Shown piece by piece: positions 33,946 to 56,257 of a stretch of DNA of 64,000 nucleotides. Source of the stretch: Oopsacas minuta (Eukaryota > Animalia > Porifera). Below the pieces are notes generated by a model. That model had not been told where the DNA came from and ran no database searches. It saw nothing but the letters and a program-made list of their open reading frames with translations. How positions within the stretch are numbered: the stretch's first letter is position 1; each line of letters opens with the position of its first letter. The stretch spans positions 620,001 to 684,000 of the forward strand of contig JAKMXF010000365.1 of NCBI GenBank assembly GCA_024704765.1. Reading direction: 5' to 3'. The position numbers were made by a program, and so were the translations under genes.

Positions 33946-36900
33946 CTAAGTAGCCTCCACCAAAAACTCTCTACACACATCAATACCAACCAGAGGACTC
34001 TCAATATTACACTTCAGCCTAATATCTGGTATAGTTAACTGGGACATTCCTTGTGTAAGTTTTTGTACCTCATCACGTACACACGGGCATCTTCTATCAG
34101 CACCACTACTAGCAATACAATCACATAATAGTTTCTCTTCCAATTGTACACAGTTAACAGTCTCAGTAGTACCGTTACAATAACACTGTTGACATTTGAA
34201 TTCAACAGCTCGCTCTATAATGGCATCCGTGGTCTCTTTTAAAAATACTTGTGAGACTTTCTCCACCAGACTAGTGTCTGTACTCAAGAATGGTTCCATA
34301 TTCCACACGTGTGTTGAAACACTCTGTGTACACAATGCTAGATCCATGTAGTCACGCTTTACGTAACGAGCCTGACCTGATATATTTAATCTAGGATATA
34401 CTTGTACACTCCCACTTGCTGTTGTTGATTTTACAGTGCTTGTATCATCCAAGGACCATATAGTCATATCTTGAGCGTTAGAGTAAGCCACACCGAATAA
34501 GTTATCAATACTCGAAGTGTTAAATTTTAAAGTATTTACTATAAACTCTAAAACAAGAGAAGTTGTTTGTCTGAACTTCTCTAATATTGATTCGAATCCT
34601 GCTTCTGAATAATCATTTGTTTGTTCGTCTGTTACGAATAAAAACATAGGAATATACCGAATAATTTCAGTAGATCTCCGTAGAATAGCATGTTCAAGAG
34701 CAAAATTGAGAGTAGCGTATCCTGGCTCTATATATCCTATTACAGTTTTTCTTGCACTTTGTAAGTTATTGATTGCATTAACAAGTTGGTTCATTCTCAT
34801 TGGTACTGATGTGTATTGCGGATTATCTGGAGTGACAAACGTCATATCTGGTGTCACGAAATGTGGATCTCGGTAGAATTCTCCAGAACCGAATGCTATT
34901 AGTTGTACTAGATTGGGAGCAGAAGCTCTACTTCCCACACACTTATATAATAACTTTTGGTTTAGGATTGGGAGATTTGTGTTTACCCACTGATGAGATG
35001 CGAGGTTACCAGACGAATCATCTACTATCACGACAAAGTCCACAGCTACATTAGAAATACAGTCAGAAGCTTCTGTGAATATGAGTTTAGTTTGGTTACA
35101 TTGCATTACTTCTCCATTCTCCAGTGTACACTGACAGTCTATATATATATATATACAGATTATATTGCGACCAATATCGTAACGAAACTTCCCCCAAATA
35201 AGCAGAGTAAATACCGAAATCACTTAGATTTGTAGATAATTTTGTAAATAGTAAATACCTCTAAATTCTAAAACTATTTTGTGTACAAATCAATTTGTAT
35301 CGTGATTTACTCAAACCTGGCTAAGTCAGATTTTTAGTTAACCGCCTCCTACAGCTATGTGATACACACTTATTATTACAAAGTATACGCACCTTCACAT
35401 CTGCCTGTTGCACCAGGTCCAATACACTAAAATATACAATTTATAAAGAATTGAATAAATGAGTCAGTAAGTATTGATTTATATCTTACCTTGTGTGTCA
35501 TTGAAGCTCCATCACAATAGTACATTAATTTACCAGTAGGGTCAAAGTAGATACTTCCAGGTTCTGTACAACTTGTGGAATTGTAAGACTTCTAAATTAC
35601 AAATTAAACATTTTCTCTCAGATAGTACATGTAATTTATATAATTTCAACATACTTACATATGGGACAGGATCCCCCTTATCACCTTGAAGTCCCTAAAT
35701 CAACAGAAATTCGTTTAAATTCAATTCCTAGTCAATGGTTAATTGCTAAATGCTCACTATATTTCCTTGTAATCCTTGTTCTCCTTGTTCTCCTCTTGTT
35801 CCCTAAATAAAAACTCTATAATAATATTATGTATTCTTAAATTTTGTAATTATAATTATAATCTCACTTTAACTCCTTGCTCTCCTTTTATTCCTTGATC
35901 TCCTTGATCCCCCTATAATACATTAATAACTAAACTCTACATTAATTTACTATATTAAATTCAAAAATAAGATACTCACGGTAGAGCCTTGTGTTCCATT
36001 CATTCCAATCTCACCCTTCTCTCCCTATAGAATATAGAATTTCTAATTACATAAGCACTGTGTTGATACAATAATGTGAATAATTAGTGATATATAATGG
36101 TGAAACTACACGTGAAACAAGGGGAGACAAGCTTATTCCTGTATGAGACAAAATGTAGTGTTAGCGTTCAAGAGTTACTGAAGGAAATAATAGAGTTACA
36201 CAATCTCAGACTAAAAGTAGATCGCCTATGTGATGAGGTCATTAACATGGCAGATCATGGAGTAGCACTACCTCCTCATATGCAAGGACTAACTGATGAA
36301 CAGGTAGGAGCATAAGAATACAATTGTCCATATAGGTAATAGTGATTACATTGATATATTTATTACAGGTAGAAGAGCTGAAGCTAGTAGACGAGTGGGG
36401 GATAAGATGTCAGCCTAGCGGAGGAGTACGTAATAATAAAGATCCTGTGGGGAGACGGAATGGTCAGGCACCAAATGAAAAGATGCAAGATGTGTTGAAA
36501 CGAACAGCTGAAGAGTCTAGACAGATGGTGTCCAAGAAACTAATTGATGCAGGCACCTGTCTCACTCTACCCATGGTGCAAACAGCTCTTGACCAGCTCA
36601 GAGGAGCTACCATGATAGTATACCCTATGGGATTACCTCCACACGAACCTGTGGACATGGAACTGAAGGGCGAGGAGGATCTGTCTGGTACTCAAGCTAG
36701 TAAACTTGTTATTGCTCTCGATCAAGGAGCCCTCTGGTTCTCTGGAAAGCAAATGGATACTAAGAAAGAACTGGCAGATTACATAGGTCGTAACGAGAAG
36801 ACTAAAATCATTTGTAAGCTACAGAAACAAGGACATGGTGCCCCCGCCAGAGAGCCAATATTCACAGAGGATGAACAGAAGAAAATGATGGCTAGTGCGT

Positions 36901-37377
36901 ACAAGAGACAGGAGGAACTCAAAAAGCTAGAATCAGCTGATGATGACTCTCATCTACACTCTAAATGGGCGGATAACCACGGACTACAGAGGTCATTCCA
37001 AGGCCTCACAGACATTGGTTGGAAGCCGAAATAAATATTATTATATACACACAAACTACGTATATACGTAAGTATTATTAATAAGAATAATAAGAAAGCT
37101 ATTAAACTCAGTACAATCACTTACCTTCTGACCTTTACAACTGAATTCTGTGTTAAATGTTGAGTTTCTACACACACCAATAGGACCTACTTCTCCCTAC
37201 ACATATGTTACATTAGTAGTATACCTGGCCTCTTTAAAATACAGTTAATATTATTGTATTTATTCAGCTCAATTACCTTGATTCCTTTCGGTCCTTGTTG
37301 CCCTACATCTCCTTTTATCCCCTAAAAATAATATAATTTAATAAGCTTTGTCAGTTTTTCAAATTGAAGATGAAATA

Positions 37378-37423
<46 letters not shown>

Positions 37424-39815
37424 ACACTTGGTCTCCTATCTGCCCTGTCTCACCATTAGGCCCTCTCTTTCCCTACAAGATAGAGTATTATATAATTATC
37501 AATGACTCTTAAAATCAAGATAGTCACTCAATTTGGTAGTGAGATACAGAAATTTTACCTACCTGTATGCCCATTTGACCTTTCTCGCCTACTTCTCCTT
37601 TAATTCCTTTTAAGCCCTGTATATCAGCATAATTATTGATGAGTAATTATATTCTTAATTGCTTAATTAGATAATACTAATCCCTTAAATTTAATCATCA
37701 TATGCCTCCTAATAACATCAAAGTACTCTACACCAGCTATACTAATAACATACAATGATTTAAACTAACTATTATACAGTACACCTGAGGGGAGTTAAGT
37801 AGACTAAATATTTTGTATATTACGTATAAGGGTATAGCTAATCAATAATTATATTACCTGTTGTCCTATCTCTCCTTGCTCTCCCTGCAATCCACCAACA
37901 CCAGTAACTCCCTAAAATTAGACTTTATTAAATACAGCATTATTTCGTACATATAAATAACATTTTTGGCTTTCAAAACGAAAATTTACAAATACAATTA
38001 ACAAAGCAACATTAACCTACAATCTTACCATTTCACCCCTGATTCCTGTAGTTCCTTGCGGACCTCTCTGTCCTTTGTATCCCTATAAACAATTAATAAT
38101 AACATACTGGATATTTTATTACAAAAAAACACAAATTTCTTAACTACCTTTTCTCCTTTCCTCAATCTCTTTGTACATGCCTAAGTAATTAATATATTAT
38201 TAATGACATACATTGTAATAATATCCAATTAATCAGCCACACATCTTTCACTGAGTGGCATAATTTACATTGAGTGGATATTAATTAACTAATTTAGGTA
38301 AAGAAGGATTCTATGTCGTCCTAACTAATTGATTCGCTGATTTAATCTTTAAACGGTTATTTTATATTATCCGTTAATGACGTAAAGGAATTGTGTATTA
38401 ACTTTGTTAATATTTTAATAATCATTAATCATTTATGAAATAGTTAACTCACTGGATCTCTCATCTTGCAGATCCCACTTCCACCCATTTCTCCTTTATC
38501 TCCCTACACAAATATACGTATATTACCTTGGTTATAATTTATCCGTAATTATTCCAGAAATAAACTTACAGTAACACCTTCCAGTCCTCTCTGACCTCTC
38601 TTACCCTATATTGAATAATTACCTTATTAAAACATGTTCAATTCATTACATAATATTACGTCTTAAAGTTAGTTAATACTGAGATAATACCTCTTTTCCT
38701 CTGGTACAGCACTCTATATCTACAAAAATTTTTATAGAATTAATAATTTGTTTGTCTAATGATTTATTGCATTCTACTAGTTGATTTGTACCAATGTGAA
38801 CTTGAACCCACCAAATCAATTTGTAACCAATTAACACGAAAAGTAACAGCATATACAATAAATATAACTTACCAGGACAAATAGCTTCGCTAAGCATTTG
38901 AATGCTATCAATCCCTCCAGAAACAGTTGGAAATGTGAATAATGTTTTATTATCAGGATCTGTAGCAATATCTTCTAGTTGTGCTTGATCGAGATTATTT
39001 CCAAACGCGAACACAAATATTTTCACTCTTCTCTCTAACTCTAGTTTCCTACTCAATTCAGCTACATTTCTATCATCTTTTCCATCAGTGAATACTACTA
39101 ATACCCGCTGTGTATTTTCCTGCCTTTTAGCATGTGTAAATACATTTTGATGTACAAACTGTAGTGCATTGTATAGATCAGTACTGGTACCGGGATATTG
39201 CTCAAATTCTAGATGCACCAGTAATAAGTTTATCTCAGGAGTTAAATAACGGACATTGTTAATAGTAGATGTGAATACTGCATATCCTGCTTTGTTTTGA
39301 GCTGAATGATCGTACAGAGTCAGTATCTCACTGACCAACTGCTTTGAACGAATAAATTCTTCTTCACCCAAACTGCCCGATCCATCTATCAGGAAGAATA
39401 TATCCACTGGATTTGTGCATACCTCAATATCTAGAATACGAATTACAAAATAAATGTATCTGTATATATATATATATGTATATTAGAAGATTGGTGCGTA
39501 ATATTTCTATCATTGTAAATGCAATCTTGTTTATCAATCACTGTTGTGTATAACTTATTCAAACCTGAATAAAATATTGATTTTATTGTGGGTTTTGATT
39601 TTGCAGATTAGATTTGGGTATTGCATCTCTCTTTCATTGGTAAATCAACCAATTTGCATAAAATTAATTTTGTATCTTTTCCTCGAGATTAATTAATTAC
39701 TTTTAACGATATCTAAATACTATTATCAACACTCACCTCGTGCCACTAAACTCCCAATTAAACCGATACATAGCGCAAGTAGTATTGATAGTACTCTGTA
39801 GTTAGTAACGTGCAT
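33946..39815 (-). CDS. Collagen B: signal peptide - VWA - short interrupted triple helix - Cys-rich module - (probably) divergent VWA-like domain
   Basis: Signal exon 39815-39737 MHVTNYRVLSILLALCIGLIGSLVAR (phase 1). VWA exon 39430-38873 (DGSGS..FTDG). Micro-exons of 29,36,51,33,54,54,54,45,45,72,45,45,45,36 bp encode Gly-X-Y between 38.7 and 35.66 kb. Then exons 35591-35490 and 35426-35393, with an inferred phase-1 splice to 35138-33946. Confidence 0.8.
36097..37034 (+). CDS. CFAP298: CFAP298 (C21orf59/Kurly), two exons, nested in a collagen B intron
   Basis: MVKLHVKQG..HGVALPPHMQGLTDEQ|VEELKLVDEW..GRRNGQAP..YPMGLPPHEP..GRNEKTKIICKLQKQGHGAPAREP. Intron 36304-36368. Confidence 0.95.
37381..37421. 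repeat. (TAT)n trinucleotide microsatellite in a collagen intron
   Basis: Read directly from the sequence. Confidence 0.9.
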
Positions 39816-41100
39816 GATGACAAACAAATTCCATTCAATAAATAATGTTGGTAAATACTGTATTTTACTTCTATATAACAGTTATGCCATGGCAGTAGTT
39901 TGAGCATTCTGAAACTTGTACATATTATGTGTAAGTAAACCCTAAACTAGCCACAATCAAGTATAAGTCCTTCCATTTACTATTAACTAAAATATAAATT
40001 TAATAAACCGATTGAATTACAGTGCTAGATATTTCATAGCATTTAGCGAAACCACAAATAAGCTATTACATCCTATCCATTTGTTCGTTACAAAATATTT
40101 TCACTTTGTTTCACGGAGATCCTTCCATGTTCAATGATATGCTTGACAATTATGGAGTTATGCCTCCACGACCACCTGTTTCAGGTCGGTATATTCATGG
40201 AGACAACAATATGTTAAAGATTGATCCGGGTGTGGGAAAATCCTCTACATTGGCCTGAACTGAATAGGAATAATAATCCGTATCAGTTCCTAGATTCATA
40301 CATTAATTGGGTACATATTGATACACATAGTTATCTAATTATTTTATTAACTATCCTTAACAGAATTAATGAATTCAGACAATTTTTAATTCACAAACTC
40401 GAAGTGAATCATTTCATTGTACGTATGTTGAATGGTTTATCGATTATCGATCATGCACCTGCGTGAGAGATAAAGAGATAAATATGATAGTGACAATAGT
40501 TATTCGGTAGCCAAATTCAACTTCTGCACATAATCTCCACCACTAAATCAAATTCTTTAATAATTGGTTAACATAACCACGTATATTATACTATCAGATA
40601 TGAATATCTTAATTTTATCAAACTTAGTAAATGTAATCAATAAATATCAACATAGTGATATGCTATTAATTTCTATGTAAAGCTGCCCTATCATAGCGTC
40701 ATGAAGAATTGGGATGGAATTATCTATTATCTATTAATTTCCATATCCTAATACTAATATTAAAGTACATGTAGAAGCTATATGTACTTTCAATATCTAT
40801 ATCTAACATTGTAGATGTAGATGTTCCCCTCAAAATATTCAATACCTAAGTGCTAATTATTCTACAAATATAGTTGTAGGTGCTGTTTCAGAGGAAACTA
40901 GATTGTTTATAATGTTTAAATTTAACTGATAGTTAGTTTAATGAATGACACACAGTAAACAAAAATTACAGTACATGATTAGGAGAATATACAGAAGTAG
41001 TTCAAAATGCCTAGTTTACAAGATAGAAATGATAAAATGCAGAACTAATCAATCCAAATGTATAAAAATGAGTAGAAATAATTGTGAACTGTCTCAAACT

Positions 41101-44100
41101 TTACAGATTGCAAGGTGTCCTTCCGATACACTATAAAGAGAGTTATAATATAAATATGTAGACTAAGGAATATTCAAGGTAACTGGTCAGTAGTGTTGTA
41201 TGTTCCCAATTTTCCTAACAATTTACTCACTACACAATACAGTATTAAACTTACAAGGTATCTTCCTCCTGAACAATAGTATATCCTGTTGATCTCTGTA
41301 TCATATAACAGACTACCATCATCTAAACAAGGTTCTTGTTGGAATGTTCTCTATAGGAATAGATTATCGTTAAGTATACAGTCGATAACAGTTATTATAA
41401 TTAATATTTTACATCAAACTAACCTTCTCTATTGCATCTCCCATCTCTCCAGTTTCACCCTATATGATAATATATATACCGGAAATTTTGCAGGCTGTGA
41501 ATTAATAGTATTAATACTCAAGCACTGGTAAGGTTATTTTTTCGAATTTTCAGGAGTTCTATTTAATCATAGGGTATAGAGAATTACACTAAAATTTTGC
41601 TGACATAAAGTTAAGTAAAGAAAATAAATAAATATATTACCTTAGCACCAGGGAAACCATTGAATCCTTTTAATCCAGTTGCACCCTAAAATATGAGATA
41701 ACGTGATAACAAGATACACCAATGTAAAGTCGAGATAGTATAAATTTGTATTAGGAAATGGAGAGGAGATATGATTAGAATCTCTTTAAAATTCAATGAG
41801 TTTCAGACTTGAATGAGTATATACTTGTACTAATCTCCCGTGAGCCAATTAGTGACGGCAATAATGAGCTTGGTGATAGAAACTGGGGGCTTAAGCTCCC
41901 AGTAATCATTATAGATAACAGTTATGCACCGAATTTGGAATCTGTATTGATAAAAATATGATAGCTCTGTGATTAGTGATATTGTAATTCAACTCACTTT
42001 TTCTCCTTTTGGTGCGTCAATACCATCGTCTCCTAAAATTCCCTGTAGAAAAGAATGATTGATAAAACATTAATAATTAATACTATAAGCAAATAATAAT
42101 GGATAGATGAACTTACAGTAAATCCTTTTGATCCCTTTTGTCCGGTTTCACCTTGTTCGCCCTATTGAGTACAAAATTAATAAGATCTCATGTATAATCA
42201 GCTAAATGATGATTACTCACTTTAGCACCGAAACATTCACTAGATCTACAAACTCCAATTGATCCTGTATCTCCCTATAGAGGGTAACGTTGGTAAATTA
42301 CATAGTACATACATACATACAGTGTTTAATCATTTATCGTAATCAGATTTCTTACTTTGTCTCCTTTCTGGCCTTGTTCGCCTGTATCTCCTTTAGCACC
42401 CTAATCACAGAAGATATAATAACGCCATGTAGCTAGATGAAATAATAATGCTGGTTAAGATTGTGTAAACCTACCTCATCACCTTTGATGCCCTTCTGAC
42501 CAGGTTCTCCATCATTTCCCTGTGATAAGTGTAATAAAATAGAATATATAGATTATACTATAGATTATATTTGTTACTTACCCTGTCTCCTCTCCTTCCT
42601 TTATCACCTTGTATCCCATTCAAACCACTTTCTCCCTAAATATAAATTAGTAATGTTTTGTCATCTTCAAGATAAATAACAACTCACCTTAGAGCCTTTG
42701 TTACCTGTGTTTCCAGGAAATCCTTTTGGACCAGTTTCACCCTATAGTACACGTAATCGTGATTGAATAAGATTTAACAGTCAAATATCTATCTATGTAG
42801 AGATTTACTATCAAACACAAACTAACCATCACTCCAGGGGGGCCAGCTACTCCATTTGGTCCTTGAGGTCCCATATCACCCTAATATGTGAATGTGAGAA
42901 TAAATACAAATATTAGAGCACCATATGAATACAAACTTATCATATATATATATATACTCACAGGTTGTCCATTGAGCCCAGAGAATACACAATCCTGAAG
43001 ATGAAATAAATCAAAGTTTATGATGAATAATTATATATTTTAAGGCTATTAACTCACTTCAAGTGTTTCACATATACCATTCTTTCCTGGCTCACCAATT
43101 TCTCCCTACAAGGAATAACATTATTTAAATCAGGTATTAGATAATGGGACAACATATATCGGCTCAAATAATTCTGTATAAACTTACTCTAAATCCCATT
43201 GGACCACGGTCACCTCTAAAACCCTAAAGAAATACATTTATATAAATCGAGAATTAAGAATTAAATATTTGTATAATTCGAACTTACATTTGGGCCTTCA
43301 CAACAAGAACGAGGTTCTGTAGAATAGATAAAGTAAATAAATAAGAATGCACAGTAATAAAGAAATTATACTTTAAGAATGTGTATACTTACCAGGACAG
43401 GCAACCTCTACTACACTACTCAGAGCTTCACGAGCTACATCTATATTCGCAAATGTAAAGTTCAAATTGTCACTTGCTATTTGAGCTAATGTATTTTGAT
43501 CTGCTTGGCCAAAACCTACTGAAAGTATCTGAACATTACTTAGGGTTTTCAGTTGGTTAGCTCTCTCGACTATTTCAGTTTCGTTCCCTGTAGAGATCCC
43601 ATCCGTAAGGAAGAATAGAATACGAGAAACGCCTTGTCTCATATTGGAGGGGGTAAACTGATTATTGAAAATCTCGTCCAGCACAGGAAGGAATGCAGTT
43701 TGTCCACCAGAGTATGGAAGTGCAGCGAGCTGTTGCTTAACTTCAGTAGGGTTTCGATTTAAAGGTGTGCTTATAACTTCATCTGTGAAGAGTAAATACC
43801 CAAACCTATTATTGGTACTTATAAAGCTGTCGATTATCTGAACTACGAAATCAATTTCATTGAAGAATTCTACAGATCCCAAACTTCCACTCATATCAAT
43901 TGCAAAGTATATATCCAAGGGTTGTGTACAGACTATAGGAGGTTCTGTAGGAGCTGGAGTGGTAGGCTTAGTTGTAGCCATGGTTGTAGTTGTGGGAGGC
44001 GGAGGGTATGTAATTCGTATTTCACTAGTAGCCTCTTCAAATGGAAAATTGTCTAGCTCAACCTGAAGAAATATATAGTTAAGTTATACTACAGTAGTTG

Positions 44101-47100
44101 AAGCCGAATATATTACACAATCTTTGCCAGAAAAACTATACTATACTGTACACATAACATTTGTAAGGGAAGTGAAAAAGAATATAATGGACTTACTCTG
44201 AATGTAAAGAAACCTTCGTGTACTGGGAAAGCTGTAGGGATCTCCAATATCTCAGTTCTGAAAGAATCACGAACAAATAACTTAAAAGAAGAATTACTAC
44301 TCCATGGTGCATTTGTAACTACTAGACCAATATTGCCATCAGGTAAGAAGCTTTGTCTAAATTCGAGTTGAGTTCGAGTTCCATCTAATGTGTTATGATA
44401 AAACCAACTGGTCCTAGACTCAGCTGCTTCCTCAGTATTGATTTCATAGTCTGCAATAATTCTGATTTCTGACTGCTCTCTAACGAAAAAACTAGATCCA
44501 ATCCTACCTTCAACATCCTGAACTGAGTCTGGTTCTATCGTCACTTGTTCTTGTGTTATTACGATCATAGTTTCACCTATTATGAAACAAACCAAGAATA
44601 ATGATATGCTTTAGTATTGTAATAAACTACTAGCACAGTTTGCTTGCTAGGGAGCGAAGTGAGGCAGGTCAATTTTGGACATAGAAACATACATATATTT
44701 ACAGTTGACAACTGTTATCTGAGTAATCTGACTTTTATCTCGAACGAATTGATAATATCCTCAAGAAAAAATGCATACCGTATATGGCCCTGAACTTAGT
44801 ATTTTCGGGACATTTTGGTCAAATATTTTTTCGATTTTAGAAATATAAAAATGTTCGGAATCTAATCATCCTAATTAGTTACATAGTGAAATCAGGCGCA
44901 AATTTCATCAAAAATTTCTTATAGAGAGTGGCGACACATTTTATTCAAAATTTTGAGCGTCCCAGCCCCTGATCAAGCCCTACTTACCTGGTGGAGTAGC
45001 ACTGGGTGTGGTGGCACTGGGTGTAGTAGCACTGGGTGTTGTAGCACTGGGAGTAGTAGCACTGGGTGTGGTGGCACTGGGTGTTGTGGCACTGGGTGTA
45101 GTGGCACTGGGTGTGGTGGCACTGGGTGTAGTAGCACTGGGTGTGGTGGCACTGGGTGTAGTAGCACTGGGTGTGGTGGCACTGGGTGTTGTAGCACTGG
45201 GAGTAGTAGCACTGGGTGTGGTGGCACTGGGTGTAGTAGCACTAGGTGTAGTGGCACTGGGTGTGGTGGCACTGGGTGTAGTAGCACTGGGTGTGGTGGC
45301 ACTGGGTGTAGTAGCACTGGGTGTGGTGGCACTGGGTGTAGTAGCACTGGGCGTGGTGGCACTGGGTGTAGTAGCACTGGGTGTAGTAGCACTGGGTGTT
45401 GTGGCACTGGGTGTTGTGGCACTGGGTGTTGTAGCACTAGGAGTAGTAGCACTAGGTGTAGTGGCACTGGGTGTTGTAGCGTTAGTTGGTGGTGCAATAA
45501 TGTCGAAGTTACTGCAGGCTAAATCATTCAATGCTCCAAGAATTGCCTAAATATTTAGAAATAATAATACATTGGAGTTCGCTTAACCGGTTAATCGTGT
45601 CTCTTGACAAGATACAGATCAACACACACTGTTTTAACAAATAAATTTACGATACAATATCAACGTGTAAATTACAAAACAGGTGGGTCAAAAGTTAGTG
45701 TATAAGACTATAAGTAGTTTATGGATACTTTCTCGTCAAATTTTAGATAATGAAAAGTTGGTCACTTCGGAAATTGAATAACCTGAATGTATCATGTACC
45801 TTAAATGACCCAAAATTTATTCTATGTTATAGCCTATGGCTCTGTATTAGTAAAATTATATGGAAAGAAGTTCAACTTACTTCGAAACAAATCATTGAGC
45901 CTAATTGAGGAGGCAAAAAATCCAAAGAAATGAATTCTTCGTTGGAGTTAACAGCACGATATATATATCCAGTAATACCGGGGTTTGTAATAACATATAT
46001 ATTGAAAGGATTCCCAAGGATAGTACCAGTTGAGATAAAGGTACTAGTGATAAGCATTCCATTGTATGACCATCGTGTATCGATAGATTCTTGATTAGGA
46101 TTCTGGAATTCATAAGTAGCGATAACGGTCAAGGATTGTCCTTCATCGAAAGAGAAATTTGACCCTATTGCACCTTCAGATATACCATCGAGGAGCTCAA
46201 CATCTGCACGATTAGTAATAGAGACAGAGGGAGCTGGAGTGGGTGTAGGTGTTGTTGTTGTTGTTGTTGTTGTTGTTGCTGTGGTAGTTGTAGCACAATC
46301 TGAAATCTTGATTAAACTGGTTGCCTCATCTGTCGTGTTCCCAAGAGAAACCTGAAATTTATTGTTAAGGATTTGTAATATTTCTAATGCACATCCCGAA
46401 ATTATACTAAAGTATAGTCGGTACACGGTAAAAAGAAAAATATAAATCAAAATGCAGACAGAATACTGAATTAGTAAAAACTCACTTCAAAAGTTATGAG
46501 GAACTCATTCACATTCAAATCGAGTATTTCCAATATTTCTTGTTTAGAATCTACATTTATATACAGATTCCCTTCATTCCCATCAACAATGACATCAAAT
46601 ACAATAAAGACTTCACCATCTATAGTTACAGTCTCTGAGGCCCCAGGAACAATGAACTGTTCGTTCACATACCATTTAGTCACAACGCTTTCTAGGCGAG
46701 GATTTACCGCATCATATTCTGAAACTATTGAGATTCTCTGACCTTGACAAATATAGAAAGTTGACCCAATTGGTAAAGACAGAGGGATAGGAGAGAATTC
46801 TGTAGGAGTGGAGGGAGGTACTGCATTAGTGATAAAGACAGATGGAAGTGGAGTGGGCGTGGGTGTGGTTTGAGACGAAGTCGGGCCTGAGAGATACAAA
46901 GAAATATTTGTGTAAATAATCAAAAACTTACTTACGGAATCTCACGCGACAATTTTATTCAGAAACTGCCAAATTATGCTAATTACCAAACAAGCAACTC
47001 TCACTTGAAATAGTAGAAAAACAAAAAATGAACAAACAAATTAATTTATAGAAGTTCTTCATAATTCAAATAATAAAAGTAATATAACTTGCTTGCAGTT

Positions 47101-50100
47101 AAGTTAATTATTACAAACATTTACAGGTTTAGCTATATGCTGGGGGATTAATCAGGGATAAATAATGATGTGAAATATTCTCAGATTAAAATTACATAAG
47201 AAAAAGTGGAAACACCACTAAATGCGGGAGTATTGAATTTATACGGCACAATTAATCTAAGTACTTAAATCAACAAAACTAACCAGTAAAGGTTGTAGTT
47301 GCTGCCGTAACAGTGTTTGAGATGAGTTGGGAAGAGAAATAGCGTACCATAAGTGTAATGTAGTATGCTGTGGAGGATTCAAGACCTTCTATTAAATAGT
47401 TTCCAACAAGAAACTCACTAACGGAGAGAGTTACATTATTTTCACATATTGTGTTATCATCTTCACTTTCACTCCAGCATAATATGACGTTTTCTATTAA
47501 GTTGGAGTTAAGTCCATCAGTTGACCAGCTAAATCTTAGACTAAAGAGGCTGCTCTCATCAACACTCAGGACAGGAACTGTAATATAGTTTAAGTAAACA
47601 CATAATGAGAAATTACAATAGTGAGCATATTTAACGGGTATTTTATTACTATGACCTAAACTTGGTATCAGAGGAGACTATAGCCCTAAGTAATTCCTAC
47701 TAGCTAATCACAACTCAAAACAGACAATGAAATTGACGTATATGAGTATTTATGTAAACAATACCTGGTACACATATTTCTTGGGTGATCATAAAGATAC
47801 TAGCCTCAGCTTCCTCAAAAGTATCAAAGGTGAAATAATTATACTCATCTGGATCTGTAGCAATAGCTCTCAGCTGTAATTCATTCAGGTTCGTTCCCAG
47901 TCCAATAGCTAGAATTCTCACATCTTGATCTTCACCAAGTTCAGTAGACCGGTTACGTAGGATTTCTACAGTCCCACTCAAAGGCACGCCTTTATAAGGT
48001 GGTACTGTCTGTTCTCCAGCAGTTAGGTATACTGCTAATCTCTGAGCACCAGCACGACGAGTGTCATCAGTAAACACATCAAACAATAGAAAGTCCAAAG
48101 GAGCAACAAGGTTAGTAGAACCACCTTCAAATGAGATTTGATTTAAAGCATCGACAACATTATCTAAGTCAGAAGTGAAAGGAATCGGGAATAGTATATC
48201 TTCATTGAAGAAATTGAATCCCACGCGAATATCTGTGTTACCAGGTTCTCTCTTCAAATTTTCGATTATACCAATGACAATAGCAACTTCTGTGTCGAAT
48301 TCTTCTTGTGACAGACTGTCGGTAATATCAATAACAAAGTGTAGATCCAGCTTAGTTGCAGAAGAACATATGGGTTGACCTAAAAGTAAGGAGTGAATGG
48401 AAATGAAAATAGGAATATTAGACATGGATGGCAAAATGGTGGATTAATAATATATCAGAAAGATAGATATACTTGTTGGGATATTTTGTGAGTAGCAAGG
48501 TTAGTGTATATACTTTGAATGATGTTACTAGAGCAGTAGTTCTCAACCTGGGGTCCATGGACCCCATAAAATGGACCAAAGAGGTCCGCAAAAAAAGGTT
48601 AAGAACCAATGTAGTAGAGGATAAATAGCACAAATGTGGAAAAGTAATATGAGATAGGATTTGTAAATTACCTGAAATAAAAGAATCACTATCAGAAGAG
48701 GGTCCTACTCCAAAATCATTAAATGCACTGATTCGTATTCGGTACTCTGATTCAGGTTCTAGAGTAAATACGTAGGAGAGAGGATCAGTATCAGGTGATA
48801 CTGTAACTTCTTCAAGACAGATATCTCCACTAGCTGGGAGGAGACAGAGATTGTATCCAGTCACTTCTTCGCCAACTGATCCTGTAACTGCTGTCCAAGT
48901 TACTGTAGCTTGTGTATTAGAAACCTCAACTGTAATAGTTTCTGAAGCTGTGGTAGGAGCTATAGAGGAAATTAGAATATGATAATAAAATAAGTACATG
49001 TCTACAAAACTGATGGATTTGTAGATACATACGCCGTGTTATAGAGTCACGAAACTCAGGTCAACATAGTTAACCGGGTCACTTGGCAAAACAGAGCAAT
49101 ACAACCAGTGCCAAATGACCTGGCCGATGTGCAAATGTGCCCCCGTCAACTTGGAGAGTTTACTATATAAAGAATAGAGGGAAAAAATTTAAGAGAGGGC
49201 AAAATACAAATTTACAATTTCAAAAACAATTCCCCACAGTGATGCTCACAATAGAGGTAAACAGAATTGGTGTAACAAACAAACAAAAGAACAAAGAAAC
49301 TAACCTCCTCCTTGAGTTGCAAGATTTACACTCTGACTCACAAATGAATCTCCTTCAGAAGTTTGTGCATAGATTACAGCATAGTATTGTGTACTAGAAT
49401 CCAGATTAGTAGCAGTGTAGGTTGTTTGTGATGCAGAGAGATCATCTAGTACATCACATCCATCTTGACTAGGATCCTTCCTTAGACAGATAACATAGCC
49501 GTTCAATGTTCCACTCGTTACTACATACTCATCCCATGTGTAGTACAGCTCACTGGAGGATTGTACTACACCTGAGAAGTTATCTACTGGACCCAGTACA
49601 AAGATACTACTAGATTCAGCACCAGATCCAACATCAGTCTCAGGGAACACAGTCACAAAGTATTCACCAGATTGTAATAGATTAGTAACAGTATAGGATA
49701 GCTGTGAGGAATCCACTTCAATTGTCGAATCACACTCTTCAGAGCTCTGATCTCTCCTCAAACACACAATATAGTATTGTACAGTAACACCAGGCACCAC
49801 ATACTCGTTCCAATTGATGGTAAAAGAGGTAGAAGTGAATGAAGATACTTCCACACCAGAAAGAGACGCTAGTTGACCTAATTATAGAACAAATCAAGTA
49901 TATGAACAATATACGTGTATAAAGTTAGATTACACAATCAGGAATTCAATTACCTGTAGTGAATGATGAACTATCAGAAGAGGGTCCTACTCCAAAATCA
50001 TTAAATGCACTGACTCGTATTCTATACTCTGATTCAGGTTCTAGAGTAAATACATAAGAGAGAGGATCAGTATCAGGTGATACTGTAACTTCTTCAAGAC

Positions 50101-53100
50101 AGATATCTCCACTAGCTGGGAGGAGACAGAGATTGTATCCAGTCACTTCTTCACCAGTTGATCCTGTAACTGCTGTCCAAGTAACTGTAGCTTGTGTATT
50201 GGTGTACACAACGTTAATAGTGTCAGGACCAGTAGTAGGAGCTAGGGAGTAGATTAGGATATAATAATATACGAGAGGGTGGAAGAATACCCCAAAATCC
50301 TCAGAACATAACGTAAACGGCTATGTTGGAGTTGATTCAAAAATGGTATGTGATGTTCAGTAAACTCCCGATATAACAAGATATAACTTCTCATATAACG
50401 AATAGCTTCGTCATCTAGTGTTCCCATTTTACAATAACTTAAGGTATTCGATATTACGAAGAGGTGGATTTCGGGCCAAAATTATCCGAAATTTGTCCGT
50501 CATAAAACCCGATATTATATTTGTGATCCTAACAATAGAGTTAAACAGAATTGGTGTAACAAACAAACAAAAGAACAAAGAAACTAACCTCCTCCAGAAG
50601 TTGTGAGATCTACACTCTGACTCACAAACGAATCTCCTTCAGAAGTTTGTGCATAGATTACAGCATAGTATTGTGTACTAGAATCCAGATTAGTAGCAGT
50701 GTAGGTTGTTTGTGATGCAGAGAGATCATCTAGTACATCACATCCATCTTGACTAGGATCCTTCCTTAGACAGATAACATAGCCGTTCAATGTTCCACTC
50801 GTTACTACATACTCATCCCATGTGTAGTACAGCTCACTGGAGGATTGTACTACACCTGAGAAGTTATCTACTGGACCCAGTACAAAGATACTACTAGATT
50901 CAGCACCAGATCCAACATCAGTCTCAGGGAACACAGTCACAAAGTATTGACCTGATTGTAATAGATTAGTAACAGTATAGGAGAACTGTGAGGAATCCAC
51001 TTCAATTGTTGAATCACACTCTTCAGAGCTCTGATCTCTCCTCAAACACACAATATAGTATTGTACAGTAACACCAGGCACCACATACTCGTTCCAATTG
51101 ATGGTAAAAGAGGTAGAAGTGAATGAAGATACTTCCACACCAGAAAGAGACGCTAGTTGACCTAATTATGGAACAAATCAAGTATATGAACAATATACGT
51201 GTATAAAGTTAGATTACACAATCAGGAATTCAATTACCTGTAGTGAATGATGAACTATCAGAAGAGGGTCCTACTCCAAAATCATTAAATGCACTGACTC
51301 GTATTCTATACTCTGATTCAGGTTCTAGAGTAAATACATAAGAGAGAGGATCAGTATCAGGTGATACTGTAACTTCTTCAAGACAGATATCTCCACTAGC
51401 TGGGAGGAGACAGAGATTGTATCCAGTCACTTCTTCACCAGCTGATCCTACAACTGCTATCCAAGTAACTGTAGCTTGTGTATTGGTATACTCAACGTTA
51501 ATAACCCCAGGACCAGTAGTAGGAGCTAGAGAGTAGATTAGGATATGATAATATATGAGGCGTTAGAATAATATCCCCAATAGTCAGAATTTGATTCCAA
51601 TGGATATTAGAAGAATTGGACACATAATACGTGTTTGTAAATGGGGGCAAACTGCATCGGATAGTGATCTGGAACCTATCTGGAAATATGTACAAGAAAC
51701 TAACCTCCTCCTTGAGTTGCAAGATTTACACTCTGACTCACAAATGAATCTCCTTCAGAAGTTTGTGCATAGATTACAGCATAGTATTGTGTACTAGAAT
51801 CCAGATTAGTAGCAGTGTAGGTTGTTTGTGATGCAGAGAGATCATCTAGTACATCACATCCATCTTGACTAGGATCCTTCCTTAGACAGATAACATAGCC
51901 GTTCAATGTTCCACTCGTTACTACATACTCATCCCATGTGTAGTACAGCTCACTGGAGGATTGTACTACACCTGAGAAGTTATCTACTGGACCCAGTACA
52001 AAGATACTACTAGATTCAGCACCAGATCCAACATCAGTCTCAGGGAACACAGTCACAAAGTATTCACCAGATTGTAATAGATTAGTAACAGTATAGGAGA
52101 ACTGTGAGGAATCCACTTCAATTTCGAATCACACTCTTCAGAGCTCTGATCTCTCCTCAAACACACAATATAGTATTGTACAGTAACACCAGGCACCACA
52201 TACTCGTTCCAATTGATGGTAAAAGAGGTAGAAGTGAATGAAGATACTTCCACACCAGAAAGAGACGCTAGTTGACCTAATTATGGAACAAATCAAGTAT
52301 ATGAACAATATACGTGTATAAAGTTAGATTACACAATCAGGAATTCAATTACCTGTAGTGAATGATGAACTATCAGAAGAGGGTCCTACTCCAAAATCAT
52401 TAAATGCACTGACTCGTATTCTATACTCTGATTCAGGTTCTAGAGTAAATACATAAGAGAGAGGATCAGTATCAGGTGATACTGTAACTTCTTCAAGACA
52501 GATATCTCCACTAGCTGGGAGGAGACAGAGATTGTATCCAGTCACTTCTTCACCAGNNNNNNNNNNNNNNNNNNNNNNNNNNNNNNNNNNNNNNNNNNNN
52601 NNNNNNNNNNNNNNNNNNNNNNNNNNNNNNNNNNNNNNNNNNNNNNNNNNNNNNNNNNNNNNNNNNNNNNNNNNNNNNNNNNNNNNNNNNNNNNNNNNNN
52701 NNNNNNNNNNNNNNNNNNNNNNNNNNNNNNNNNNNNNNNNNNNNNNNNNNNNNNNNNNNNNNNNNNNNNNNNNNNNNNNNNNNNNNNNNNNNNNNNNNNN
52801 NNNNNNNNNNNNNNNNNNNNNNNNNNNNNNNNNNNNNNNNNNNNNNNNNNNNNNNNNNNNNNNNNNNNNNNNNNNNNNNNNNNNNNNNNNNNNNNNNNNN
52901 NNNNNNNNNNNNNNNNNNNNNNNNNNNNNNNNNNNNNNNNNNNNNNNNNNNNNNNNNNNNNNNNNNNNNNNNNNNNNNNNNNNNNNNNNNNNNNNNNNNN
53001 NNNNNNNNNNNNNNNNNNNNNNNNNNNNNNNNNNNNNNNNNNNNNNNNNNNNNNNNNNNNNNNNNNNNNNNNNNNNNNNNNNNNNNNNNNNNNNNNNNNN

Positions 53101-56100
53101 NNNNNNNNNNNNNNNNNNNNNNNNNNNNNNNNNNNNNNNNNNNNNNNNNNNNNNNNNNNNNNNNNNNNNNNNNNNNNNNNNNNNNNNNNNNNNNNNNNNN
53201 NNNNNNNNNNNNNNNNNNNNNNNNNNNGAATCTCCTTCAGAAGTTTGTGCATAGATTACAGCATAGTATTGTGTACTAGAATCCAGATTAGTAGCAGTGT
53301 AGGTTGTTTGTGATGCAGAGAGATCATCTAGTACATCACATCCATCTTGACTAGGATCCTTCCTTAGACAGATAACATAGCCGTTCAATGTTCCACTCGT
53401 TACTACATACTCATCCCATGTGTAGTACAGCTCACTGGAGGATTGTACTACACCTGAGAAGTTATCTACTGGACCCAGTACAAAGATACTACTAGATTCA
53501 GCACCAGATCCAACATCAGTCTCAGGGAACACAGTCACAAAGTATTGACCTGATTGTAATAGATTAGTAACAGTATAGGAGAACTGTGAGGAATCCACTT
53601 CAATTGTTGAATCACACTCTTCAGAGCTCTGATCTCTCCTCAAACACACAATATAGTACTGTACAATAACACCAGGCACCACATACTCGTTCCAATTGAT
53701 GGTAAAAGAGGTAGAGGTGAATGAAGATATTTCCACACCAGAAAGAGGTTGTAGTTGACCTAATTATAGAACAAATCAAGTATATGAACAATGTACGTGT
53801 ATAAAGTTAGAGTGCACAATTACGAATTTGAAAGAGCAATATAATCCTATATAGCACGTATTGGTCAATTTAATAATGTACCTGTGAAGACAAATATATC
53901 TGATAAACTCCAAGGGCCACCACCAGCTGAGTTAAAGGCTCTAACTCTGATTCTGTAGAGTGTATTAGGTATTAAACCACCCTGAACCAATGTGAGAGGA
54001 TCATCGTTTGCATCTATTTCTTCCGATATTGTACAACCTTCTTCATTTACCAATCTGAAACAGACTACGTAGTGGAGTATGATTCCATTTTCTGTTCCTG
54101 AAGGGATAGGGGAAGTTGTGACCCGTATTTCAGTGGCTGATACACCTACCGCTTGAACACTAGTAGGAGGTTTACTTGGAGCTAGAAAGATAACATTTTA
54201 ACTTGCATACTACCCGAATAATTCAATTATAATATATCTTACCTCTCTCTAGAGTCATTGCATCAGTATAGCTAGCATCAGACAAATCGTCAATCGCCGC
54301 TCCCACAACTACTACACTGATGTAATATCTAGTGAAGGGTTTCAAGAAGGGAACTGATATGAATGACAGTGTGGGGTCTACGGGCACGTTTATTTCACAA
54401 GACGCAGGATCAGAATCTTCCGACAGACAAACTGAAAACCCCAGTATTGGGTCAGCAGGAAAGTACAGATATGTATTCCATAAAATTTCAATTTGATGGC
54501 TAGATACGCCTTTAGCTGTTAAGTTAGTGACAGGAGCGATAACTGTACCTCCAACAGCTAGATGTACTATAGGAATGAAGGGAGTCAATAAAGTATTGTA
54601 CATTTGAATATTCTATTTCAATAAATATAAATGAAGGTAAAAATGAATACTATACAAGTATAACGTGTATATGTGCAGCGGAATTCCAGATCTTGATAAA
54701 TAGAAAACAACCAATTAGACACATTTATGCTAGCAATCTAGACTTCTAGATCAAATAGCATAATACCCAAAACGCACCTTGGTAAACAAAGATTCTACTA
54801 CGATGCCAAAAGGAATGTAAACTACAATCCTAGGAACAAGAAGCTAGAATTGACAGTTTAACGAATTCCATAATAAAGTTAGTCTCAGCTGGAATAAATT
54901 AACTTGTGGCTTATGGATACCATTTTAAGATGCTGACTGATTCGTTGAGAATTATTTTATTGTGCACAGTGATTGTTCATACATCGCATTACCTCGCTAT
55001 TGGCAGTTTATTCACGAAACCCAGGAGGATACTCAACTGTCTCCAAGAGTCATGAAATTCTATGCATGAATATTTTCGTTTTCACCAACCCCCGACGTAA
55101 CGCGCTTCCTTGGCGTAGAAACAAAATGTCCAATTTCCTATTTAGTTCTAGATATGTCTCTACAGTATCCAAAAATGGTTTTGCGTCAAATAGAATGAGA
55201 TAACATACCACTGATTTGTAAGGCAACTGAATAATTTATTAAATTCATATTATAACATACTACTGATAGGAAATATACAGACAATTTTATTAATATTAAT
55301 CTATATTGTTAAATCTCAGTGATTGTTTGTTTGTTTATCCGTTGTCAAGGAAAGGATTTATGGTATGCACTTTTGAAATTTCCGCATAACTATGTATTTA
55401 TTGTGTTTATCGCTAAATGTATCGAACATGATGAATCCGATTTTCACACTTTTGGATTAATCATATGTAAATTTACTGTTGTTTTTATGAATATAAAGTA
55501 AACACATTTCAAAATTGAGGTAGAATCATACTTTCAACGGCTATCCTAGGGTAATCGAGTATGCTGAGTCCGAATATGCTATCGTAAACAACATATTGTG
55601 AATATTTGTTTACTTTTAGGTACATAAAGTAAACAAAATTCAAAATTGAGGTAGAATAATACTTTCAACGACTATACTGGGATAATCGAGTATGCTGAGT
55701 CTGAATATTGTAAACAACATCAATAATTTTATATCTCAATTGTTGTTTGGCTGTTTGTTTGTCCGTTGAATACCTCGAGGCGCAATGCGCCGAGTTCATC
55801 GCGAAGCGACGAGCCAAAGGCTCGTTTAACTATATATTGTTTGTAATAATGGAAAAGGAAAAGTAACTATTCTATGGAAAAATATGGAATAAACTACTAA
55901 ACTCAAGCAAATTAAACCGGAATTGGAAAAAGGGCCTATGGATGAAGAGGGAATAATGCAGTATTCATCAAATAGCAATTTTGTTATGACAGGAAAATTC
56001 ATGTATAATGCATGTTAACATATCTATGATGGGTAATGCCAATTTTCTTATTTATTCCCTAATAGATTACAGTTTTTAATTCGTAAATTTGTATAAATTA

Positions 56101-56257
56101 TCTGTTATTATATCTAGGAATAGTATGTGTAATAGTGTCAAATTAAAACGCGAAATTCTGTAATTATTAAATAGAATAAAACCTACACATATTCACATAA
56201 CATACCTGTTAGCTGCAACAGCACACAAATAAAAATAATTGCAAGCCTAATATTCAT
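41101..56257 (-). CDS. Collagen A: signal peptide - ~14 FN3 - VWA - FN3 - Ig-like x2 - (ATTPS)32 - Ig-like - VWA - short interrupted triple helix - Cys-rich module
   Basis: Signal exon 56257-56206 MNIRLAIIFICVLLQLT (phase 1). FN3 exons lie at 54.6-48.7 kb and 47.3-47.6 kb, VWA exons at ~47765-48380 and ~43395-44063. Micro-exons of 29,36,48,33,54,54,54,45,45,54,45,45,45,36 bp lie between 43.3 and 41.4 kb. The last exons are 41350-41255 and 41130-41101 (CIGRTPCNL*). One FN3 unit has a 1-bp frameshift and one is broken by an N gap. Confidence 0.78.
45001..45480 (-). repeat. Coding minisatellite, 32 x 15 bp, encoding (ATTPS)32
   Basis: Unit GCACTGGGTGTAGTA and variants. The exon has a phase-1 GT donor (CCAG|GTAAGT) near 44988. 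Confidence 0.93.
48534..48611. mobile_element. 78-bp hAT/Charlie-like mini-MITE in a collagen A intron
   Basis: TIRs CAGTAGTTCTCAACCT / AGGTTAAGAACCAATG (13/16 match), near-TSD TACTAGAG / TAGTAGAG (7/8), and an internal palindrome GGGGTCCATGGACCCC. Confidence 0.7.
48671..53760 (-). repeat. Tandem array of at least 4 near-identical two-exon units (2 FN3 + 1 FN3 each)
   Basis: The double-FN3 exon recurs at ~49302-49880, 50586-51160, 51707-52275 and 53228-53760. The single-FN3 exon recurs at ~48671-48961, 49953-50241, 51236-51526 and 52352-52556. Confidence 0.9.
52557..53227. other. Assembly gap (671 N) within the FN3 tandem array
   Basis: Run of N. Confidence 0.99.
55300..55833 (+). mobile_element. 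Putative non-autonomous Helitron-like element in collagen A intron 1
   Basis: Starts A|TCTATA, contains (TGTT)n/TCCG motifs twice and an internal ~120-bp tandem duplication (~55495-55600 and ~55626-55720). A 7-bp hairpin ACGAGCC-AAA-GGCTCGT (55809-55825) precedes CTAT (the canonical end is CTRR). Confidence 0.5.

Follow-up and report, generated by a model that had tools for sequence, protein, structure and literature searches.

A tandem pair of candidate short-rod VWA-collagens from Oopsacas minuta, a glass sponge

The locus and its shared exon skeleton

The window analysed, a stretch of 64,000 nucleotides from Oopsacas minuta in whose own numbering all coordinates are given here, carries on its minus strand two genes, A and B, each of which appeared in a six-frame scan as a cluster of Gly-X-Y repeats, at 43223-41424 (gene A) and 38605-35659 (gene B), these being the two clusters found. 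When the exon borders were then set by splice sites, the exons that follow the VWA exon measured 29, 36, 48, 33, 54, 54, 54, 45, 45, 54, 45, 45, 45, 36 and 96 bp in A, and 29, 36, 51, 33, 54, 54, 54, 45, 45, 72, 45, 45, 45, 36 and 102 bp in B, with AG/GT borders at all exons of both series. The cysteine landmarks fall in equivalent exons: a CC pair in the 29-bp exon, GIC in the 48-bp exon of A and the 51-bp exon of B, and GVC..C in the corresponding exon of 54 or 72 bp. An initial annotation, which read the locus as a pair of secreted genes whose micro-exons correspond one to one, had listed both series and placed the three landmarks in the same way; the splice-site delimitation reproduced the series base for base, and the predicted signal peptides agree with that reading, the signal exon of B being seen also in RNA. 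The listing was nevertheless incomplete at its 3′ side, as A does not end there but continues into a further terminal exon (41130-41101), and an extra 34-bp Cys exon of B (35426-35393) had been overlooked.

Over the rod and knot exons, A and B are 39% identical, one third of this identity being glycine. In both helices Pro amounts to 2-10%, Lys in the Y position to 24-25%, and Asp/Glu in the X position to 36%; because the imino-acid content is low, the stability of the helix is uncertain. The possibility that A and B form a single gene was rejected, given that A has a stop codon and an ATTAAA, and that B has its own ATG and signal exon; RNA coverage between the two, at 40350-40949, is zero. 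The RNA basis, here and below, consists of the contigs of one public run (X4), of a kind unstated on its record, and spliced contigs mark it as RNA-like. Searches and fold predictions were run on individual exons rather than on joined (spliced) chains.

Domains and transcripts of the two genes

Gene B begins with an exon at 39737..40321, with a 5′ leader in one RNA contig, an ATG at 39815, a signal peptide and a phase-1 donor. The exon at 38873..39430 encodes a VWA (Pfam VWA, 8.6e-24; MIDAS D-G-S-G-S) with RNA joints, confirming the single N-terminal VWA that had been proposed for this gene. There follow the 29-bp CC exon (38691..38719; splice sites and RNA), the first part of the helix micro-exons (36, 51, 33, 54, 54, 54, 45, 45 and 72 bp; 37125..38605; scan and RNA), and an intron of 1100 nt (36025-37124) within which CFAP298 lies antisense, on the plus strand (36097..37034), with its own 65-nt intron, an arrangement that is also found at the orthologous locus. 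Beyond this nested gene are the second part of the helix micro-exons (45, 45, 45 and 36 bp; 35659..36024; scan and RNA), the two knot exons (35393..35591), one of 102 bp with C...YYC and the 34-bp one with CIGPGATGRCE, which ends in phase 1, and the C-terminal head exon (33946..35138), whose stop codon is at 33946-33948. The public model P0001 uses the same splice sites that were set here for B; it starts after CFAP298 and covers the 3′ half of B alone, because the antisense gene sits in one of the B introns.

The B head, of 396 residues, has an inserted beta-sheet, a Cys-rich tail and a degenerate MIDAS (D-D-S-S-G), while DxSxS is intact in the helix-adjacent VWAs. Its sequence profile matches PTMP1, the integrin alpha1/alpha2 I domains and COL6A2, and its predicted fold (pLDDT 79, pTM 0.79) gives Foldseek matches that are all VWA folds; Pfam returned no significant family for the head or for the knots, the VWA of the head remaining below thresholds. 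By profile and model, then, the head is a divergent VWA fold, and the VWA-like C-terminal domain suspected at the outset holds, with an RNA joint and P0001 as further support.

Contigs of X4 cover in B the joints from signal to VWA exon (39737/39430), VWA to 29, 29 to 36, 51 to 33, 33 to 54, 54 to 54 twice, 45 to 72, and 72 to 45, the last spanning the nested gene (37125/36024); at the 36-to-51 and 54-to-45 joints there are loose contig ends only, and for the 45-to-45 joints there is no row among these contigs. The contig depth of the first exon is about ten-fold below that of the other B exons, and an alternative 5′ end for gene B is possible.

In gene A, the signal-peptide exon (56206..56257; ATG at 56257, 17 codons and 1 nt, phase-1 GTATGT donor) was recognised from sequence only, and the exons from this one to VWA2 are linked by frame-compatible splice sites and by the exon order of the orthologues. 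The first two FN3 exons (53882..54566), at about 54566-54243 and 54181-53882, have Pfam fn3 matches and inferred splice sites, and are followed by a tandem array (48672..53759; Pfam fn3) of four units, each composed of a two-FN3 exon and a one-FN3 exon, which measure 1116-1284 bp (1.1-1.3 kb) and are 97-100% identical. Within this array lies an N gap (52557-53227), which cuts at its upper edge into a two-FN3 exon and at its lower edge into the one-FN3 exon that follows; the reading frame is maintained through splicing and not through the gap. By homology to the sister units, the gap should conceal 304 nt or some 471 nt rather than 671, or such a length with whole units in addition, and since it sits in a near-identical tandem array, the continuity of the gene there and the number of its FN3 domains are uncertain. 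Compared with its three sister exons, one exon of the second array unit lacks 1 nt at 52124/52123; this deletion breaks the frame of gene A as assembled, and the gap interrupts it.

The arm continues with a distal VWA (47765..48379; Pfam VWA, 2.7e-20; MIDAS variant D-I-T-D-S), an FN3-like exon (47284..47655), two beta-sandwich units (45881..46886), each preceded by a Thr/Pro linker, a mucin-like exon (44988..45546) in which a 15-nt unit (ATTPS) occurs 32 times, a third beta-sandwich unit (44197..44576), 57-61% identical in the orthologues, and the helix-adjacent VWA exon (43393..44062; Pfam VWA, 3.5e-23; MIDAS D-M-S-G-S), which ends in CPG at phase 1. The second VWA and the mucin-like rod attributed to A in the initial annotation are thus both present. 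Its count of about 15 FN3 is reached with 14 Pfam fn3 units and a fifteenth, that of 47284-47655, for which there is no Pfam match; likewise, its three Ig-like units are predicted all-beta sandwiches with weak V-set Ig matches and no significant Pfam family, and as Foldseek gave nothing below E 0.001 with the beta-sandwich model, ‘Ig-like’ remains a description.

On the helix side, A has the 29-bp exon, whose CC pair lies shortly ahead of the helix (43288..43316; splice sites), thirteen helix micro-exons (36, 48, 33, 54, 54, 54, 45, 45, 54, 45, 45, 45 and 36 bp; 41424..43223), the last two junctions of which are seen in RNA, and the 96-bp knot exon (41255..41350; C...YYC), with RNA joints on both sides. 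The helix comprises about 59 triplets, with two Cys-pair breaks and one G-to-A imperfection. The terminal exon (40940..41130), which rests on RNA and on the end of the orthologue, encodes CIGRTPCNL and a stop, after which the 3′UTR runs to the ATTAAA at 40942, where RNA coverage ends. The X4 contigs join 45 to 36 to 96 bp and to the further exon at 41130; a loose contig end at 41255, considered as an alternative exon, was rejected, as it corresponds to the start of the exon at 41130. RNA contig depth reaches its maximum for the window in these correctly spliced 3′ exons of A, and both A and B are transcribed in the same library.

The A chain therefore ends nine residues into the second exon of the knot, after the four-Cys knot, and the gene does not have the 396-residue C-terminal domain of B. 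This headless end is kept by the A orthologue of another glass sponge (L011), which finishes in CIGKEPCNV and a stop; tblastn detected no copy of the B head downstream of A within the 64-kb window, and none lies within 8 kb after the A orthologue. Judged by sequence, A is a headless derivative of a head-bearing family.

A probable sponge family and the known collagens

A and B are likely to be ancient paralogues that belong to a sponge-specific family; its members are secreted collagens with a short rod, in which an arm ending in a VWA is followed by about 59 triplets and a four-Cys knot. The elements of its plan are: (i) on the N-terminal side, a signal peptide and arm domains, the last of them a MIDAS-bearing VWA, with CC 4-5 residues before the helix; (ii) a helix of about 59 Gly-X-Y triplets in segments of 8-9, 31-33 and 19, with two breaks, each of which has a Cys pair; (iii) a four-Cys knot, C...YYC...CIG...C, beginning 8-12 residues after the last Gly-X-Y and spaced C-x(15-17)-C-x(7-9)-C-x(5-8)-C; (iv) and finally, in B, in paralogue C, in P0035 and in P0030 of Corticium, though not in A, a divergent VWA head with a Cys-rich tail. 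The combination of some 172-183 Gly-X-Y residues with a C...YYC...C...C knot occurs in A, B, C, P0035 and Corticium P0030; the triplets are about 58-59 in C, the orthologues and P0035, and the Gly-X-Y residues about 183 in Corticium P0030 and in the giant form P0026.

Paralogue C lies 140 kb away, with the order beta-sandwich, VWA, helix, knot and head; P0035 is a family member in the form of an uninterrupted ORF; a giant single-exon paralogue follows the same plan, with about 59 triplets, knot and VWA head; and an uncharacterised Corticium protein (XP_062521220.1), again of the same plan, belongs to a second sponge class (homoscleromorph). The orthologues keep the exon sizes of their own type, L010 those of B, and L011 and L012 those of A, whose domains are also kept in these two at about 60% identity. 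Two relatives of the family stand in RefSeq as Salmonella proteins. No published description of the family was found in the literature searched, in line with the earlier view of an undescribed collagen; in the genome paper on Aphrocallistes, two pairs of tandem collagens are mentioned, without identifiers, as being upregulated in the growth zone.

Judged by their domains and helix features, A and B would fall outside the collagen VI, FACIT, IV/spongin and fibrillar families, the defining features of which were not found in them. Pfam scans of the large exons gave fn3 and VWA only, with no C4/NC1, COLFI or TSPN domain in A or B, and the absence of NC1 and COLFI had already been remarked. Collagen VI resembles B in its layout of VWA, short Cys-bearing triple helix and VWA, and resembles the pair in that one family contains both N-terminal arms that are long and multi-domain and others that are short, alpha3 being the long chain of collagen VI and alpha1 and alpha2 its short ones; the best solved-structure match of the helix-adjacent VWAs of A and B is COL6A3, whose many VWA repeats inflate the score. 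However, the collagen VI helix is a single one of 335-336 residues, as against about 59 triplets in three segments; it is followed by two canonical C-terminal VWAs, as against one divergent head with a Cys-rich tail in B and none in A; the four-Cys knot after the helix sets A and B apart; and the long arm of collagen VI is made of VWA repeats, whereas that of A is made of FN3, beta-sandwich and mucin modules.

With the FACITs XII/XIV, and with collagen VII, A shares an FN3 array with interspersed VWA on a short interrupted helix and, by analogy, would share the role of a trimeric connector that displays long arms. It differs from the FACITs in that Pfam finds no TSPN/LamG beside the helix, and in its CC pair, its Cys-pair breaks, and its extra beta-sandwich and mucin modules. 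FACITs have a conserved two-Cys motif at the COL1/NC1 junction, in the place of which A and B have the four-Cys knot. As FACITs are regarded as deuterostome innovations (PMC3002383), the likeness of A to them is best read as convergent domain shuffling.

The order VWA, interrupted helix and VWA of B is also that of collagen XXVIII. The latter has a much longer helix and a Kunitz domain; going by this description, B departs from it in its shorter helix, in having no Kunitz domain, and in its divergent head with a beta insertion and a Cys-rich tail. Within the glass sponges, the giant form has in common with A and B the GIC landmark and a rod of about 183 Gly-X-Y residues (homologue P0026), and the B head matches the C210 locus, of the giant Ig-collagen-VWA-head form, with E 1.2e-12; the collagen part of the giant form lies in one giant exon, with several heads and I-set Ig domains, in contrast to the 54/45/36-bp phase-0 exons into which the helix of A and B is cut, and to the headless A. 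Spongin short-chain collagens and collagen IV are, like A and B, non-fibrillar short collagens of sponges with Cys-rich C-terminal non-collagenous domains, but no exon of A or B matches PF01413 (C4), and the C-terminus of B is predicted to be a VWA fold. As for the fibrillar collagens, there is no match to PF01410, and the helix is short and interrupted.

Chain assembly and significance

For A and B we infer triple-helix formation, a disulphide pattern, secretion and ligands, in such a way that three chains would wind together into a rod of some 50 nm, in which interchain disulphides at the CC pair, at both breaks and at the knot would keep the proline-poor and charge-pair-rich helices in register and add to their stability. 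This rod would show three arms, and in B also three heads, as multivalent VWA/FN3 binding sites, and these arms and heads could tie matrix components or cells together; by analogy, A would function like collagen XII/XIV or VII, and B like collagen VI or XXVIII. By default, we would expect homotrimers, or else mixed trimers formed among family members, without any rule particular to A and B.

A stricter alternative, which we consider unlikely, is that A and B are obligate partners in one heterotrimer, a collagen-VI-like system of long and short chains, with the B head supplying chain selection or assembly. The equivalent helix segment lengths and Cys positions of the two would fit it, as would a conservedly headless A beside a B that keeps its head, transcription in the same library, and the order A-(MFS)-B, kept on one strand in another glass sponge assembly at 60-78% identity; however, in a third assembly the A orthologue is followed by a further A-like gene and not by B, and contig depths, a weak measure, differ several-fold between A and B. 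Moreover, the helix register extends to C, P0035, the orthologues, Corticium P0030 and the giant P0026, so that the matching register of A and B is a property of the whole family, and A and B are only 39% identical over rod and knot, with a third of that in glycine. The break and knot exons of A have the lengths of C (48/54/96) and not of B (51/72/102), A and C both have a beta-sandwich unit directly before the VWA, and theirs is the top pairwise identity, 46% overall, with 15/32 in the knot exon as against 8/34 for A and B. This could mean that A co-assembles with C-type chains, the adjacency of A and B being only a remnant of tandem duplication; but such similarity may equally reflect ancestry, and C lies 140 kb away, and we hold this partnership to be very improbable.

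A last possibility is that gene A is in decay or was assembled wrongly, its frameshift and its missing head being the marks of a pseudogene. The 1-nt deletion against three sister copies and the missing head could be taken in this sense, but the deletion falls in a 97-100% identical array next to an assembly gap, a setting in which polishing often introduces errors, the 3′ exons have the highest contig depth in the window with correct splicing, and the headless end is kept in L011, as are the exon sizes and domains in L011 and L012; a pseudogene is thus hardly credible. If we accept the preferred reading of A and B as paralogues of one sponge family, it is conceivable, although rather doubtful, that sponges independently evolved a collagen-VI-like split, in which the headless A would enter, solely via the shared knot, into heterotrimers with head-bearing B and/or C. 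In that case, the stoichiometry of the mixed rods would set the numbers of long FN3/VWA arms and of VWA heads per rod, and the collagenous matrix in the growth zone of glass sponges could be organised by such rods.

Collagens in which FN3 and VWA domains accompany a short, interrupted helix are usually treated as elaborations of the vertebrates or deuterostomes (PMC3308698, PMC3002383). In the present case, the FN3/VWA short-helix design is found in an expressed and conserved glass-sponge gene, on a core of helix, knot and head that is probably sponge-specific; as this core is present also in a homoscleromorph, and the FN3/VWA design in a glass sponge, complex connector collagens would have arisen more than once. 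The family could also serve as a compact model of how chains are selected when no trimerisation domain of the C4, COLFI or FACIT type is present, on a rod of about 59 triplets with disulphide landmarks predicted at four places. At the level of annotation, the public gene model of B needs its 5′ half, with an antisense gene in the intron.

Two linked genes on one exon skeleton

The two Gly-X-Y clusters found in the window by six-frame scan lie on the minus strand, as do all parts of the genes to which they belong, the long-arm gene A and its short-arm neighbour, gene B. When exon limits were set from AG/GT borders and the open frame, the micro-exon series proposed in the initial annotation were reproduced exactly: 29, 36, 48, 33, 54, 54, 54, 45, 45, 54, 45, 45, 45, 36 and 96 bp in A (43316-41255), and 29, 36, 51, 33, 54, 54, 54, 45, 45, 72, 45, 45, 45, 36 and 102 bp in B (38719-35490). 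Every helix exon of both genes is in phase 0 and begins with a Gly codon. The cysteines are placed equivalently, as had also been proposed: the CC pair in the 29-bp exon, which takes over in phase 1 from the VWA exon before it, GIC at the end of the first helix segment, and GVC..C at the second of the two breaks (Cys-pair interruptions of the rod).

Splicing could be followed in the sequencing run X4, taken as RNA-like on the grounds that 40% of the stretch's words are present in it and that it is the sole run with joints, which were examined over 35950-41949; all are GT..AG and on the proper strand. In B they connect the signal exon to the VWA (39737/39430), the VWA to the 29-bp exon, 29 to 36, 51 to 33, 33 to 54, both 54 to 54, 45 to 72, and 72 to 45 over an 1100-nt intron (37125/36024); 36 to 51 and 54 to 45 are shown by loose ends, and for 45 to 45 X4 has no row in this interval. 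Within the 1100-nt intron (36025-37124) a plus-strand CFAP298 gene is nested antisense (36097-37034; Pfam 1.5e-40), itself spliced over a 65-nt intron. The public partial model of B (P0001, 492 aa) opens with an internal Met immediately downstream of CFAP298, and its splice sites for the last seven exons are those found here; B is thus a real gene that public annotation has split or truncated, the antisense gene being the reason why the model begins only after it. In A, the joints run from 45 to 36 to 96 and on to an additional exon at 41130. A ends in its own stop, after which X4 coverage drops to zero, and B begins with a separate ATG and signal exon; the two are therefore distinct same-strand genes, as first described, the signal exon of B having RNA support.

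The first exon of B (39737-40321) is covered by one RNA contig, which extends 506 nt or more upstream of the ATG. Its depth is some ten-fold below that of the other B exons, so that B may have a long leader or an alternative 5' end. At 41503-41504, in an intron of A, both the DNA run X1 and X4 carry 38 letters missing from the assembly; either the locus is polymorphic for an indel or the assembly has left these letters out.

The knot and the C-terminal head

Past the 102-bp exon, two more exons follow in B, one of 34 bp (CIGPGATGRCE, phase 1) and one of 396 codons, ending at 33946. The additional exon of A reads CIGRTPCNL-stop, with ATTAAA about 190 nt beyond, where RNA coverage stops; A therefore retains the four-Cys knot that follows the helix (C...YYC...CIG...C), without the large C-terminal domain, or head, of B, no copy of which lies between the two genes.

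The head has no Pfam match, and yet the earlier suggestion that it is probably VWA-like is borne out. An exhaustive HMMER search gave 32 relatives, the distant ones with a Pfam VWA domain aligning at that VWA, and a profile of 21 sequences matched, among solved structures, mussel PTMP1, the integrin alpha1/alpha2 I-domains and collagen VI alpha2. In the AlphaFold model (pLDDT 79, pTM 0.79) the VWA core is supplemented by a beta-sheet insertion and by a Cys-rich tail, and the significant Foldseek neighbours of the model are all VWA folds (integrin beta I-like, CMG2/ANTXR, C2a, alpha2-I). To judge from its residues, D-D-S-S-G against a family consensus D-E-S-x-S, the metal site of the B head is probably degenerate. 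In the helix-adjacent VWAs of both genes DxSxS is intact, and within the PDB these domains are closest to the COL6A3 VWAs.

A wider family and its proposed rods

The genome searched for paralogues comprises 61,460,524 bases in 365 contigs, the published assembly of Oopsacas minuta (Hexactinellida) being of 61.4 Mb in 365 sequences (PMC12749355). It holds two paralogues of the B head. One, gene C, lies 140 kb distant on the same contig, in the order beta-sandwich-VWA-CC-micro-exons-knot-head, the micro-exons being of 48, 30, 54, 54, 54, 45, 45, 54, 45, 45, 45, 36 and 96 bp; the other, on contig C210, is in a 1759-aa open frame, with collagen in single exons. Two highly similar minus-strand ORFs, each of about 420 aa and with a membrane anchor at the N-terminus, stand in tandem just upstream of C (518583-521329 of the contig; L006 6084-8830).

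The beta-sandwich-VWA-CC-helix-knot-head order recurs in one chain in WP_411022856.1, a 651-aa ORF that runs uninterrupted on a contig of 1955 nt; XP_062521220.1 of Corticium candelabrum (Homoscleromorpha) has helix-knot-head without an N-terminal VWA. Helices are of about 59 triplets each in A, B and C, of about 183 Gly-X-Y residues in the Corticium protein and the giant homologue P0026, and of 174 in WP_411022856.1. A and B thus belong to a larger family and are not a pair alone. WP_411022856.1 and WP_411024939.1 are RefSeq partial proteins mislabelled 'Salmonella sp.'; they are clearly of animal origin and members of the present collagen family, encoded on contigs of 0.9-2 kb that lack introns, and probably represent sponge-like cDNA contaminating bacterial assemblies.

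In one other glass-sponge assembly (loci L010, L012), the B orthologue (head 64%, VWA 78% identical) has the identical exon series and the nested CFAP298 (L010 7726-8661); upstream on the same strand come an MFS transporter and then an A orthologue with the A series. The A-B linkage is old. The MFS sugar transporter (L012 10001-11602) is absent from the window. The A orthologue of a third assembly ends CIGKEPCNV-stop, the headless end being conserved there, and a second A-like gene follows it (L011 15000-20795). The break lengths of the A type and of the B type are each kept in orthologues.

In the literature, the Oopsacas genome paper treats, as to collagens, only the absence of collagen IV; reviews mention VWA collagens of unknown function in Hydra; FACITs are placed in deuterostomes (PMC3002383); and an Aphrocallistes paper reports, without identifiers, growth-zone upregulation of two tandem collagen pairs.

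The shared plan would produce trimeric rods of about 50 nm, clamped by interchain disulphides at the CC pair, both breaks and the knot, which would make up for helices that in A and B are poor in proline and rich in charge. VWA/FN3 arms would project from these rods, together with VWA heads in all but A, and the rods may serve as matrix connectors. That A and B co-assemble as heterotrimers would be in keeping with their matching helix register, linkage, co-expression and complementary ends, but the register is common to the whole family and A resembles C more closely than it does B, so that we consider such mixed trimers improbable.

The arm of gene A

The second VWA attributed to A is present, Pfam finding the domain twice. 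Of the approximately 15 FN3 units claimed, 14 are recognized by Pfam and one further exon is FN3-like only. The FN3 total, and the intactness of A in the gapped stretch, are uncertain because an assembly gap falls inside near-identical units and a frame is broken. The gap, with its edges in consecutive FN3 exons, lies within a tandem array of four units of 1116-1284 bp, 97-100% identical; by comparison with the sister units, it is expected to conceal not 671 bases but 304 or about 471, or else one of these amounts and whole units besides. At 52123-52124, one FN3-pair exon is a single nucleotide shorter than its three sisters, so that the frame of the assembled gene is broken; the base may have been lost in polishing, or the lesion may be genuine. 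Splice sites that preserve the frame can be chained, on the sequence itself, all the way from the signal exon (56257-56206) to the second VWA.

As for the three supposed Ig-like units, their all-beta predicted fold (pLDDT 65) stands, the Ig assignment having weak V-set matches only; they align with one unit in C and one in WP_411022856.1. In an unrelated secreted protein, a fifth genome copy of this beta-sandwich unit (531700-532041 of the same contig; L007 9165-9722, minus strand) directly follows the signal peptide and precedes TSP1-type repeats, which makes the unit a mobile matrix module.
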